A stretch of DNA of 64,000 nucleotides from NCBI GenBank assembly GCA_001643675.2, contig LSRY02000051.1:62001-126000 (forward strand), given 5' to 3'. The DNA is from Monocercomonoides exilis PA203 (Eukaryota; Protista; Preaxostyla). Below are positions 4,330 to 11,007 of the stretch, in pieces; position 1 is the first letter of the stretch, and each line of letters begins with the position of its first letter. The position numbers and the translations under genes are program-made. Under the pieces are notes generated by a model, which saw nothing but the letters and a program-made list of their open reading frames with translations, was not told the origin of the DNA and did no database searches.

Positions 4330-5270
4330 CAGAAGCAAAAGGAGAATCAGGGAGGAAACTGAAGGTTACAAATATCTTTGGTGTCAAACTTGCAGAAAAA
4401 AAACCTCAATATATAAGAATTCCATATTTTCCAAAATGAAACTTCCGATGAATATAAATTTGCAGACTCTATAGTGCTGTTGGATTGAAATTGGATTTAA
4501 ACAAATATATTTACTTACATGTGTTTATTATCCAACGATCGAATATTGGATAAGCGTTGTTCGAGTTGTTTGAACACAAACGTGGAATGAAACGATTTCA
4601 AAATTAGGATGAACGGGGAAATGCATCGAAATATATGAGGCTGTTTAGAGGAGAAGGAAATATGGAAGAGGAAAAAAAAAGACATGCTGTGGATTTTCTG
4701 TGAAGTTGAGAGGATGGAAGGAGGAGAAGCTTGAACAAATTTTGTTATCATCGTACCAGACAGAAAAAAAGAAACATTGATCCCTATTATTCAAGAAAGG
4801 ATATAAGCAGGCACAACAATTATAAGTGACGAATGGAAAAGCTGCAATTGACTGAAAGATAAAAGATATGTTTATATTCTTGTTTTCCACAAAAGGAACG
4901 ACAAAGACCCAGAAACAGGTGCTTGCACCAATTCCGTTAAAGGGTTGTGGAGTCATTGAAGAGCTTTTTTCACTTAGTAAGGTATTAGAAAAACATTCAA
5001 AATAAATCGCTTGTGCATGTGGCTTGTTCAAAGGAATCTCAATCCAAGTTTTGCTGATATTTTGTAATAAATAACACATTTTGTTCAGTATGTCAAGCCC
5101 TTAATTGTGGAAGAAGAAATTGATTTTTCAGAAAATGAAGAAATTCCTGATACGGATGAAATTCAACATGAGTAGCACGATGCTGAAATTGATGAAGATT
5201 CGTCTGGAATTGATGACGGAGAGGATGCTTTCGATTATTCTGATGAAAAAGCAGAAATCTTCAGTTGTTA
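4330..5270 (+). pseudogene. Merlin (IS1595/IS1016-like) DDE transposase pseudogene
   Basis: Translated fragments read WCQTCRKKTSIYKNSIFSKMKL, GKCIEIYE..RRKYGRG, LWIFCEVER, IVPDRKKETLIPIIQERI*AGTTIISDEW and DPETGACTNSVKGLWS, followed by an acidic tail. There are many stops and the catalytic residues are altered. Confidence 0.85.
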
Positions 5271-7220
5271 AGTTTGAATGAAAATCAATTGATTCGAAAT
5301 TTTTAAAACATATAACGATATCTTCAGATAAATATCATTTCTTCAGAAACACAAATGAAATCAATTGCAACATGAATTATCAAAATTATTAAGTCAAGAT
5401 ATTGTATTTATTTGTCCCGAAAACTTAATACTTATTATATTAATGAGCTTTTAAAAGAAACCAATATTTCCATTAAAGACTGAAAAAGAGAGAAAAGTGA
5501 TAATCACTTTGTGGATAACTTCTTTGTTCAATTCTTCAAAATTCTTCCATAAATATAATCTTTAATAAATGATTCTTCTTCTGTATTCAAGGATAAATCA
5601 CCTGGTTTATCAGATTCTTCATATTCATCAAATAAACATTTGAAAGGTTAAGCCACATTTATGTTTTCAAAGCCAAAAACAATCATCACACACTTTTTTT
5701 CTTGTTATCCAAAAAAAGACCAAAATTTTCGGTGAAAACAAATTCATATGGGTGATTATTTTTGAAATCAAAACTTTTTTCTGGGTGTTGATATTTCAAA
5801 GATTGTTCATCTTTGACAAGAAATATTTCTTTAATTTGAGAAATGTTAAACACATCTTTAATGAGCGAATGTTTAAGATTAATTCATTGAGAAATTATAA
5901 TCAAATGGAAAATAGATTTTTGGTGTTCTTTTATTCATATTCAATGCAAATTTTCGGAAAGAAAATTTCGACAGAAGAAATATGATATCAAAAATTATCA
6001 CCCGATAATGTAGTATTAATGTGAAAAATGCAAAATTGATTGAGATGTCCGTCTTTTTCTTTGTCAAACAATTAAATTTTTTATTATACAATGATCTTTC
6101 TCAACTCAAAAAAAAACTTCATTTTTCTTCAGATAAAAATTGTTAATAACACTACATTCAACATCCATTTAATCACATAAATGGGTAATTATTTTAGAAA
6201 TCTTATTTTTTCTGTAAAAACATTTGGATTGAAATTTTGTTTTGCATATTTGTCAGTGCACATAGAAAAGTAATAACACCGTCTTCAACAAAAATGTCAT
6301 TAATGCATTTAAAACGTAGGCATAGGTGTAACTGTCTACCTTTTGGAATTCTGCGTTTTAATTATTAATTTTTGAATGTTAAAAAAGCAAAAATTATTTT
6401 AAAACTTTTGTATGGACCGATTTTTCGCAAAAATTTTTGTTTCTCGTGAAAAAACATTTTTAAAAAATGACCCATAAATATGAGTTTTTTTCAAAAAAAT
6501 TAATAAAAATTGATAATTTTGAAACAAAAAGTAGATGAAATGTTATTAAATGTTATATTGTCCTATTTTAATAATAAATATTTGAGAAATAAAACATTTT
6601 AAAAATTAAATTAAAAAATTTAAATAATTTGATCAATCCCACAATGAAATATCTAGTTCACAAGAAATTAATTTCAGCTTTCTATCGATAAGAATTGAAC
6701 CCTCGTTTGAGATTATATAACAAATCATTCACATAAATATAGTTTTAAAGTATGTGATGAATGATTATCAATATATCATTCAAATTTTTTTGAATTTTGT
6801 TTATGATTTTTAAGCTGATCAACTTTGTGCAGTAGGAGGACATTCGCATAAAGTCATGGTGACAATGATAAAGAAGCATTGGAAAAACGTTTGTTTGCGT
6901 TCTTTTCAATAATTAACAATATTTTTTCTAATTTTTTGACAGTTCTCAATTAACATTGAATATTTTTTCCTGATATAAGAAGAATGCTGAAGACAAAGCA
7001 TAATTGAGTGAAAAAGATGCATTAAAGCACAGGGAGAGAATGAGATGATTATTTTTGAATAAAGAAAAGAAGCAATTCTGATTTCATATTTTTGAGGATG
7101 AATTTCCGAACGAACAATGCAATAAGGCAGAATTATTTTTTTCTTGAACGTTTCATTATAACATCAATGTTTAGTAAGGTCTAATTTCAATTTGATTTTC
7201 TCGAAGACCATTACGATATT

Positions 7221-9100
7221 TTGAATGAAACAAATGGAGGAGATAATTTCAATTACCCATATGATACGGATCAGATTGGATTTATCATGATTCATCGCAG
7301 TGATTCAATAATTGTGAGCAGTTTGAATGGATCAAACGACAGACAATGTGGAACAAACACACTTCCATGTTATTCAATTGAGCATGGGCTGGTGCATCTG
7401 ACATCTGAATATGTGAGCCAAATATTCATTGTTGAAGAGAGTGTGATTTGTGAAGAGATAAATCTGGAGGAGATGAGTCTGAGTTCGAAGAGCAGAGAGA
7501 TGTGTGAAGTTGAGGTGAAATCGGAGATTGAAAAAACAAAGGATTCTTTGATTTCAACAAGAGAAACAGTCTCGTTGATGAGGGTGATTTTTGTGTTTGA
7601 TTCGAATTACATCTCTTCTCATGAATCGCTAATATCACCAGATAAAGGGATTCTTGAGATAATAAATTGCTCATTTGACTCAAAACAATCTAATGAAAAA
7701 AGAAATATAGAATTAGCAAACATTCCATTTCACATCATTAATACGGCAGAAGGAGAATTACAACTTGATGGATGCACAATATCAAATCTAATTCTTCAAA
7801 AATCTTCAATATATCTATCACCATCACTTCCATCAGTGATTTATTTGTTTGAGATCAGCAATTCAACAGTTTCTCATTCTCTTGTTGAAATTATTGAATA
7901 TGGACAGATTGAAGGTTGAAAATATCACAGTTGAAGGAAATGAAGAATCATTGATATGTTGCCTGTCAATGAAAAAGACAATTCAGTTGACAAATTGCAC
8001 AATAGGCGGAGTCAGTTCAAACAAAGCAAAAGGAAAATTCATGAAAGTGGAGAATTGCACAGATGTGAAAATGGACAGTTGCATTTTTGACGGGAGTTCA
8101 AATGAAAGAAATGAAAAGAATTTGAATGCTGAAGAGGAGATGTGCAAATGGGAAGGATCACTTGTGGATGTTGTGAAGAGTTCTGTGATGATGAAGGATT
8201 CAACAATCTGGAATTCACCAGAAGGTGGAATAACAATGAGTGGAGGAATTGTTTTTATTGAAGCAGGGAATTTTTCAAACAATAATCCCTCAATTGAAGG
8301 ATATCCATCATTGAGAAGAAACATCATCTGTTCAGATTCAGGAACATTGAATGTGAAGAGTTTGAAAGGAGAAGACGGATTGAAGGACAATTCATCACTT
8401 TGGATGTTGAATGAAGGGTGCAGTTTTGAAGGGATTGCTTCTGAGAGGGATTCATCATTTTTCATTCCTGCATTGGAGAGTGTGGAAGCAAAAGAAGAGG
8501 CAGATTGAATGAAATTGATATTCAAATGGATGCCTATTATTCCTTGTGACTTGTCATTCAGAGTTGTGTATAAAACAGGGGATGTGGAGTTGGTCGAGAC
8601 ATATGAATTTGAGGAAGATAGCTTTGTTTCAGAAGCAGAAGTGATTGGAACAATCCCATCAGCAAATATTTCAACGATTGAAGATGAAACAGAGATTTCA
8701 GTGATGATTTTGTTTGGAAAGCAAAGGGTTGCAACTTCTCCGCAGATTCTGAAGAACAAAACACAATCAAAGACTGGAAATGATAAAGTGGTTGAAGGAG
8801 GAAAAGAAGGGAAATCTTATTGGTTGTTTATTGTGATTGTATTGGGAGTATTATTTTTGATTGTTCTGATTGTATCTGTTGTTCTGGCTGTTCGGAGGAA
8901 GAAGGCAAAGAATGAGAACAACGATCTGAGAGAGATTGTGAATGATAACATCAAGAAGGATCCGACGGCATTTGAGATGGTGACGATGGAGATGTCACCA
9001 GAGGCGCAGTGGAGGAGGAGGAGGAGGAGGAGGAGGAGGAGGAGGAGGAGGAAGAAGAAGAAGAAGAAGAAGAAGAAGAAGAAGAAGAAGAAGAAGAGAG
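7221..9100 (+). pseudogene. Truncated, disrupted copy of an expanded type I membrane/surface protein gene (beta-helix-like ectodomain + TM)
   Basis: Three collinear ORFs (7221-7919, 7849-8508, 8509-9201) are separated by a frameshift near 7910 and an in-frame TGA at 8506-8508. There is a TM helix YWLFIVIVLGVLFLIVLIVSVVLAV followed by RRKK. The copy lacks an N-terminus and its C-terminus is replaced by a microsatellite. Confidence 0.8.
9011..9095. repeat. Compound (GGA)n(GAA)n microsatellite
   Basis: Directly visible in the sequence. Confidence 0.95.
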
Positions 9101-10252
9101 AAATGCAGATAAAAAATTTGAAACTTTTTGAAATAGAAATATTGTTTATTCCGTTATTTTGTTATCATTTTTTAATGATGCATTTTCACATTGTTTTTTA
9201 ATCTTTCAAATGAGTGAAGCTCGGAACGGAAAGGCATGTGAATTAAAAGAACACGCTTTTTCCTCGATGAACTGATAAAAAATTTAAAAAGCAAAAGGAA
9301 AAACAAATATGAAATGACTATAATTTTTTTTCAACGAAGTACTTTTTCAGGAGAAACTATTTAAATTCATTCCTTTATTATTAAAAAGAAATAGCAATAT
9401 GAACACAAATAGTGATTGATAATAATCAAATTGAATCTAATTTTGATAATCAGAATGCTGAAAAAAGCACAAAAAGACAAAAATAAAATTTATATAAGAT
9501 AAATGAACATATGAGAAAAAGGCAACATAATACAATACGAACAAAATTGAGGATTTAAAAAATAACATTTTCGAAACTGATACGTTTCTGAAATGAACAA
9601 GAATGATCTTTGATATTCAAAATGAAAATGCCAGACCATTTAAAGCAAATTCAACAGTTCATTCCGATCCAATTATCTGCAATAACATTTTCATAAAGTT
9701 CAAGGAGGATTCGTCTGCATTTGCATAGCCTATCATGCCAAAAAGCCAAAAAATTAATTTCTTGTGAACTAGATATTTCATTGTGGGATTGATCAAATTA
9801 TTTAAATTTTTTAATTTAATTTTTAAAATGTTTTATTTCTCAAATATTTATTATTAAAATAGGACAATATAACATTTAATAACATTTCATCTACTTTTTG
9901 TTTCAAAATTATCAATTTTTATTAATTTTTTTGAAAAAAACTCATATTTATGGGTCATTTTTTAAAAATGTTTTTTCACGAGAAACAAAAATTTTTGCGA
10001 AAAATCGGTCCATACAAAAGTTTTAAAATAATTTTTGCTTTTTTAACATTCAAAAATTAATAATTAAAACGCAGAATTCCAAAAGGTAGACAGTTACACC
10101 TATGCCAAAACGTATGCTTTTTTAAACAATAGCAATTTATAAAATACTGGAAAGATAATATTCAATCCATTGACAAACGAAAATAAAAAATTCGAAATCC
10201 CAAAAAAAGTTATGATTTCAAAAATAATCACCCAAATGAACAAAACTTCTTT

Positions 10253-11007
10253 CACCAAAAATTATTCATAGTCGAAAAACTTTCACTCAAAATCGAAAAT
10301 TTTTCAACAAAAGTCGAAAAACTTTCAATCGAAATCGAAAATTTGAAATAAAAATTAAGAATTAAATAAAGAGAATTCAATTGAAGAACAATATAATTCT
10401 TTAATTATAGTGATAATTATAAGCAATGTTTGTGTTGTTGTTTTCTGAAAATTTTGATGATTTCGAACCTTAATAAACTCAAAAATGAACTCGAAACAAA
10501 ACAAAAACATTTGTTTCCTTCAACAAGAAAGGAGTTTTTTGATATGAAAAACTCGAAATAAGAGAACCAATATTGCGTGCATCTTTCTTCATTAATTATG
10601 TGAAAATATTAATTATATATTTTTTTGTAAATCTATTGAAAAGAAGTGTTCTTTCAAATGAAATAAGATAAAAATATATCAGAATTTCTCTCACATTTCT
10701 TATTTTTGTAATTGGACAAAAGAAGGCAAAGAAAAACATCGGAAAAAAGATGAAAAATCATTAAAACAACAAATATCATTGATATTTCAACAATAAAAAT
10801 GTTTTTTGACTTTAATTGAATTTTGTCAACTCTTTGAAATTTTGAAAAACTTCGAACTTTCGACTTTGCTTGAAAGTTTTTCGATTTCGTTTGCAACTTT
10901 TTCAACTTTAATTGAAACTTTTTCAACTTCGAATGAGAACTTTCGACTTTGAATGAAAGTTTTCCGACTTTGGTTGAAAGTTTTCCGACTTTGAATATTC
11001 TTTGGTG
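10253..11007. mobile_element. CACC-terminated non-autonomous element with subterminal ~21-bp tandem repeats
   Basis: caccaaaaattattcatagtcgaaaaactttc matches the inverse of gaaagttttccgactttgaatattctttggtg. Arrays of AAAGTCGAAAAACTTTCA-like units at 10270-10340 are inverted at ~10850-10995. Confidence 0.7.

Follow-up and report, generated by a model that had tools for sequence, protein, structure and literature searches.

DNA transposons of the Merlin superfamily have been described in the amitochondriate metamonad protist Monocercomonoides exilis PA203, in which more than 100 copies belonging to at least seven families were found, with 8-bp target-site duplications (TSDs) and with pseudogenised copies in which terminal inverted repeats (TIRs) and TSDs are retained (PMC8101967). 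Merlin elements have TSDs of 8 or 9 bp. Their TIRs start with 5'-GG and are 24-462 bp long (summarised in PMC8101967). Pack-TYPE elements have been described in plants, and they include Pack-MULE, Pack-CACTA, Pack-hAT, Pack-PIF and Pack-Mariner (PMC8903248, PMC6379663). This paper is centred on a 3,788-bp element located at positions 6319-10106 of a stretch of 64,000 nucleotides of the M. exilis PA203 genome (the whole stretch is hereafter called the window). The element carries, between two inverted repeats, a truncated gene of a host transmembrane kinase-like family. It is a non-autonomous member of a cut-and-paste Merlin (IS1595-like DDE) family, and its cargo was probably inherited already truncated and reshuffled with that of its relatives.

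A repeat search of the window revealed one outstanding pair of inverted repeats, 6319-6674 and 9751-10106, each of 356 nt, 100% complementary and separated by 3,076 nt. A perfect inverted repeat of this length cannot arise by chance. The features of the element are as follows:

6311-6318, no strand: left copy of the TSD, 8 bp, AAAACGTA, by direct sequence reading; same as 10107-10114
6319-6674, plus strand: left TIR, 356 nt, beginning GGCATAGGTGTAACTG; 100% complementary to 9751-10106
6675-7049, plus strand: subterminal transposon backbone, specific to the transposon family and collinear in all its members, by genome search
7050-9015, plus strand: cargo pseudogene of the host transmembrane kinase-like family, equivalent to amino acids 278-939 of MONOS_16010, by protein-level matches
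9016-9097, plus strand: purine microsatellite of (GGA)n followed by (GAA)n, where the cargo breaks off at its 3' side, by repeat search and direct reading
9126-9750, plus strand: non-coding filler of 625 bp, confined to the non-autonomous sub-lineage, by genome search
9751-10106, minus strand: right TIR, 356 nt, by repeat search
10107-10114, no strand: right copy of the TSD, AAAACGTA, by direct sequence reading

The preliminary description of this sequence had reported a 3,788-bp element with identical 356-bp TIRs, an exact AAAACGTA duplication and no transposase, and all of this was borne out by direct reading and by tblastn, since no transposase was found inside the element with the 381-aa transposase of the family as query. 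AAAACGTA has no resemblance to the 8 bases just inside either arm (6675-6682 and 9743-9750), and the duplication is therefore one of the whole 3,788-bp unit rather than of each 356-bp arm. This speaks against the possibility, raised in that description, that the 356-bp unit is an independent repeat with its own TSD.

The transposon family was characterised by genome searches covering the assembly of 82,301,135 bases in 101 contigs (C numbers below denote contigs). The 8.2-kb copy on C40 encodes an open reading frame (ORF) of 381 aa that matches PF12762 (DDE_Tnp_IS1595) with E = 2e-21 over profile positions 6-153 of 153. Transposase matches lie between the TIRs of the family in nine elements, so that the autonomous partner sought for the window element has been found, and the transposase ORF is free of stops in the C40, C13, C61 and C8 copies. 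The first 16-22 nt of these autonomous relatives are the same as the termini of the window element, whose 356-bp TIRs begin GGCATAGG and have 5'-GG ends. Judged on sequence features (a whole-domain HMM match of the transposase, the TSD length and the 5'-GG termini), the ends of the element are Merlin-derived, as the preliminary description had considered. The arms of the autonomous relatives, of 0.86-3.76 kb, are beyond the 24-462 bp range of Merlin TIRs.

At least 42 TIR homologues were scored among 224 candidates genome-wide, with 79-89% identity; nearly all of them begin at the terminus, and most are arranged in facing inverted pairs 3-14 kb apart. The 16-nt terminus GGCATAGGTGTAACTG occurs 115 times with two mismatches or fewer, vs 34 occurrences for a control, and the approximately 80 termini above control correspond to a family of about 40 elements. 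Besides the 15 elements examined, eight further pairs with the same 16-nt terminus are present, at C1:733533-737123, C1:801515-805104, C27:63114-65787, C27:98518-101190, C25:765401-768552, C25:1178062-1181217, C57:416305-423328 and C91:696074-706169. The subterminal sequence 6675-7049 (375 bp) gave 58 candidates, many of the scored matches being facing inverted pairs inside Merlin elements and none of them lying on C41 or C42, which are gene-rich contigs. TSDs of 8 bp were recognised in 12 of the 16 elements inspected (10 perfect and two at 7/8), and all of them differ from each other; the same cargo is seen at several loci with different TSDs. The TSD does not match in four elements (L033, L034, L035 and the C21 copy), and the motif GAATTTT is common to the left flanks of L034 and C21 and to the right flank of L035. 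Copies may have exchanged their flanks through recombination, or the motif may mark a target that is preferred.

The C40 copy (L031, G000:C40:438804-447022) and the C13 copy (L032, G000:C13:361774-369988) are 99.8% identical, with 16 differing columns of 8,220 aligned, mostly in short repeats. Each has flanks and a TSD of its own (CTCCTAAC and AGAAAAAG), and in both the transposase ORF is intact. Near-identity at separate loci implies a very recent movement, and the family looks currently or very recently active. One member has been inserted into another on C25, where a 3.9-kb non-autonomous sibling of the window element (1204732-1208630, TSD ACTTCAAT) is nested in a 12.9-kb autonomous member of the family (G000:C25:1201151-1214079; L049 and L050; TSD CAAAAAAG). 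Two other ideas were discarded: i) the homology between the flanks of the window element and those of the C8 copy vanished once the flanks were compared alone, and was alignment slop, ii) the element is not a miniature inverted-repeat transposable element (less than about 800 bp, no coding remnant, high copy number), as it is 3,788 bp long, holds a 1.95-kb gene remnant and has only seven copies of its form.

The kinase-like gene is present in all of the elements examined (15/15), in the same orientation and starting about 730 bp from the same (left) end. It is longer in the autonomous copies, and in most of these the normal C-terminus is reached. In the C61 copy there are two ORFs of 584 and 1,277 aa with one stop between them; taken together, they follow host proteins collinearly over approximately 1,860 aa, starting around residue 130-220 and continuing up to the end. 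The gene lies inside extended inverted arms in most autonomous copies, these arms being 0.86, 1.58, 2.49, 2.7, 3.19 and 3.76 kb long and 96.7-99.9% identical. The cargo is a trait of the family and not a private capture by the window copy. Capture by the window element itself, as first proposed, is not supported, because its junctions are shared with its siblings and the autonomous partners hold the same gene at the same place. Different cargos between the same TIRs, which the preliminary description had named as a sign in favour of its claim, were not seen in the 15 elements: all of them carry one gene family.

Together with six other copies, on C25 (the nested one), C14, C58, C52, C41 and C29, the window element makes up a non-autonomous sub-lineage. 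The 625-bp filler has only seven full copies in the genome, which are 77-78% identical and each adjoin a TIR, and it is absent from all the autonomous copies seen. Its first 206 bp match an inverted pair located elsewhere (G000:C1:2261814-2262018 and C1:2266700-2266904, 4.9 kb apart), and part of the filler may come from the end of another transposon family. In the copies of the sub-lineage that were examined the cargo breaks at the same place (aa 935-947), before the filler. When the window element is aligned with the C25, C58, C52 and C14 copies, the match continues across both cargo junctions, and for the C25 nested copy it is a single alignment of 3,971 bp. The window element can also be aligned with the autonomous arms over their left 1.1-2.7 kb. 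Elements differ in how far the cargo extends towards its 5' end (aa 1, 15, 129, 179 and 278-307), and a deletion of 870 bp (aa 421-717) with the same limits is found in five copies, four of them autonomous and one non-autonomous.

The cargo of the window element (7050-9015) matches residues 278-939 of MONOS_16010, which is the 1,277-aa ORF of the C61 element, with 58-65% amino acid identity. It was correctly recognised from the outset as a gene truncated at its 5' and 3' ends and frameshifted. There are three in-frame stops (7056-7058, 7182-7184 and 8506-8508) and one frameshift near 7909-7910. The assembly of M. exilis PA203 is nanopore-based (PMC8767320), and this single frameshift could be a consensus error. 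The part retained covers a partial ectodomain, the single transmembrane helix and the first 65 or so cytoplasmic residues, without the N-terminal part and without the kinase-like C-terminus; it ends in the (GGA)n(GAA)n microsatellite, in place of the purine-rich stretch that codes for RRAEREAE in intact genes.

Every protein homologue recovered is a MONOS_* entry of M. exilis. The cargo is a fragment of a host coding-gene family with 4,588 candidate matches in the genome, whose intact ORFs have about 1,700-3,100 aa and are 74-77% identical. This family corresponds to the "protein tyrosine kinases" reported among the largest gene families of the organism, which overlap the 35% of "unclassified repeats" (PMC8767320). 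The C-terminal domain of two of its proteins (P0001 and P0003) matches only profile positions around 161-258 (the C-lobe) of PF07714 and PF00069, and a simple motif search found neither an HRD nor a DFG motif in the kinase-like domain, so that the family may be made up of pseudokinases. No Pfam domain was found in the ectodomain; a right-handed beta-helix or Chlam_PMP-like fold (scores of 0.82-0.87 in an Atlas feature search) is a weak lead. The label of surface or membrane protein is reasonable for the cargo. The DNA closest to it is 79-82% identical, and the genome search located no parental gene above 82%. Some element-borne genes have been annotated as ordinary genes of M. exilis: MONOS_16010, MONOS_7487, MONOS_15949 and MONOS_17342, located at L041:3001-6834, at L035:2003-4591 and in the C21 and C7 elements.

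The arms of each element are much more similar to each other than to those of other elements. The TIRs of the siblings are 79-86% identical to those of the window element and the two arms of each sibling are 97.9-100% identical; across the family the identity is 96.7-100% within elements vs 79-88% between elements. In the C40 copy (arms L031:501-3238 vs L031:5994-8719) there is no difference over the outer 2,267 bp, followed inward by some 520 bp with 69 differing sites (13%). So abrupt a change resembles the border of a tract of arm-to-arm conversion. Such conversion must be what homogenises the arms, because transposition does not. Since the arms evolve in concert, the perfect TIRs do not date the window insertion, and the recent mobilisation deduced from the clean ends in the preliminary description is unsafe: diverged siblings also have near-identical arms. 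The intact TSD (8/8) suggests that the window insertion is not very old.

The mechanism that we propose would involve several steps. The kinase-like gene would have entered the ancestor of this Merlin family, and the window copy would have inherited it already truncated. Recombination between elements, along with patchy gene conversion involving host paralogues, would later have reshuffled cargos and backbones, leaving the cargos in different host clades. The two arms would be held identical by arm-to-arm conversion, and the element is putatively mobilised in trans by the transposase of its relatives, with a staggered cut of 8 bp.

Several results weigh against this explanation. A tree was built from a query-anchored protein alignment (aa 278-935), in which 116 annotated proteins of the family were set beside 20 element-borne copies. 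The latter are scattered in the tree, with at least nine changes forced by well-supported branches in FastTree and seven in IQ-TREE, and the monophyly of the element-borne cargos is rejected (delta lnL 1047, AU p = 4e-6). The nearest rows to the window cargo are host genes on C41, for instance P0104, an ORF of 1,630 aa at C41:651961-656850; judged from coordinates, there is neither a family terminus (0-1 mismatch) nor subterminal sequence near it, and the same applies, also from coordinates only, to the surroundings of the host family genes on C41 and C42. Repeated independent capture would yield the same polyphyly. Besides, the backbone/cargo junctions are only 60-67% identical between sub-lineages and cannot be placed to the base. 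A derivation of the window element from a known autonomous copy by simple internal deletion was rejected, as the filler is absent from every autonomous copy seen. Finally, the locus is known here from the assembly alone; the four DNA runs that contain it share a single sample, from which the assembly was probably made, and are not independent.

The polyphyly is nevertheless read, from the pattern of sequence similarity, as the result of patchy conversion or recombination with host paralogues and with other elements after a shared origin. Four structural characters, i.e. the TIR subtype (TCTA vs CGTC at positions 17-22), the filler, the 870-bp deletion and the 5' extension, conflict pairwise, with all four combinations present, which requires recombination between elements. 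The nearest relative changes along the length of each cargo: an identity of 94% to the host protein P0071 is reached over aa 571-716 of the C25 nested copy, whose other segments are at most 82% identical to their best matches. A shared origin followed by exchange is favoured because of these conflicting characters, the segment-wise relatives and the shared junctions. A more far-reaching proposal is that the family has a permanent 'cargo slot' for the largest gene family of its host, repeatedly overwritten by recombination or conversion with host paralogues (at least seven cargo lineages) and duplicated into kb-long concerted arms. We put this forward tentatively, and give it somewhat less than an even chance.

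A true Pack-type capture would mean that a transposase-less Merlin shell itself took a fragment of a chromosomal kinase-family gene, and that other members did so independently, either by template switching in gap repair or by mobilising the DNA between two neighbouring insertions. The positions of the cargos, in at least 7-9 separate places among the host genes, and the rejection of a single clade are what this process would leave, as are the different 5' extents of the cargo and the collinearity of the C61 cargo with host proteins over approximately 1,860 aa; moreover, the gene family and repeats make up about one third of the genome (PMC8767320), and random captures would often strike it. 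However, independent captures do not explain why the gene in 15 of 15 elements is of one family, has one orientation and begins at a constant distance (about 730 bp) from one and the same end, nor why the 3' break (aa 935-947), the microsatellite and the filler are common to the non-autonomous copies, with alignments unbroken across both junctions. The window cargo lacks a parent above 82% identity, and a segmentally mosaic gene family accounts for the polyphyly without new captures. We therefore consider such a capture unlikely, although it is the chief alternative.

It is far less probable that the gene is an accessory gene of the transposon itself, and that the host family descends from element-borne copies stripped of their ends. 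Intact ORFs of 903-1,277 aa in some autonomous copies, annotated as genes, and the frequent duplication of the gene in both arms would fit this origin, but thousands of host-gene candidates stand against about 40 elements, and the host genes are longer (about 1,700-3,100 aa), even the longest element-borne copy lacking their first 130-220 residues. The subterminal sequence is absent from the gene-rich C41 and C42, and a single family terminus (0-1 mismatch) occurs on C41. An assembly-made inverted duplication, or two solo 356-bp repeats that happen to bracket a host pseudogene, comes last in probability. The nanopore-based assembly is the argument for it; on the other side, the 8-bp duplication flanks the pair and not each arm, the arm homologues mostly face each other as inverted pairs and begin, with few exceptions, at the terminus, six further loci have the complete interior enclosed by a pair of this kind, and 15 relatives have the same architecture. 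An assembly artefact is thus very unlikely.

The surroundings of the element contain other repeated sequences. A remnant of a different Merlin-type transposase is located at window positions 4645-4956, 1.4 kb upstream, and is 30% identical to residues 148-257 of the family transposase, for which a first look at the genome gave 758 candidates. An inverted repeat of about 110 nt (5724-5832 and 10151-10263), 70% identical and 83% over a core of 54 nt, brackets the insertion, so that the window element may lie inside an older short inverted-repeat element. Just downstream, at 10253-11007, there are two tandem arrays of 21-bp units in mutually inverted orientation, which form arms of up to 84 nt with 76-87% complementarity.

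These results have implications for the study of this genome and of Merlin transposons. Merlin elements are able to carry coding sequence of their host and to move it, and their inverted arms can reach several kb while staying identical by concerted evolution; TIR identity is consequently unusable for dating insertions in this family. The carried gene belongs to a kinase-like family that, together with "unclassified repeats", makes up about one third of the genome (PMC8767320), and part of this unclassified fraction can be reassigned. At least four annotated "genes" of M. exilis (MONOS_16010, 7487, 15949 and 17342) are transposon cargo. The element does little to explain the expansion of the surface-protein family, to which it had been suggested that it could contribute, as there are about 40 elements vs thousands of host gene matches, too few for this purpose. 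If the 'cargo slot' proposal were true, the transposon would be a mobile participant in the shuffling of a receptor-kinase-like family, and no gene-carrying (Pack-like) system of the Merlin superfamily would have been documented before it; we know of no comparable case in a protist.

Long arms of this kind have a parallel in Galileo, an element of the P superfamily in Drosophila, and in foldback-like elements, in which the TIRs have hundreds to thousands of bases and vary in length between copies. The arms of Galileo-type elements are near-identical within a copy, and chimeric copies arise by exchange between sub-lineages; their transposase belongs to a superfamily other than Merlin. To our knowledge, no Galileo-type arms built from a host protein-coding gene have been reported.

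The closest known counterparts of the present family are the Merlin elements described from a fragmented 454 assembly by Lopes et al. 2021 (PMC8101967), with which it shares the organism, the superfamily, the DDE_Tnp_IS1595 transposase, the 8-bp TSDs and the 5'-GG termini. However, most of those families have TIRs of 23-29 bp, whereas the TIRs of the present family have at least 335 bp and up to 3.76 kb, and contain a gene of a host family. Non-autonomous elements, cargo and kinase genes are not mentioned in that work, and the TIR terminus of the window element was not found in the accessible part of its supplements. Like the Pack-TYPE elements of plants, the window element is a class II element without transposase, bounded by TIRs and a TSD, in which a coding-gene fragment has been moved to several loci (transduplication). 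Neither the term 'Pack-Merlin' nor a case of it was found in literature searches. The name suits the window element by the operational definition of Pack-TYPE (PMC8903248), and does not suit it as far as acquisition by the non-autonomous element itself is concerned. The present system differs from the plant elements in its superfamily (Merlin) and in its host, a metamonad protist. It also differs from Pack-TYPE elements in that the cargo is present, and longer, in the autonomous partners, and in that the same gene family is found in every element examined; the cargo looks inherited and converted, rather than captured piecemeal.

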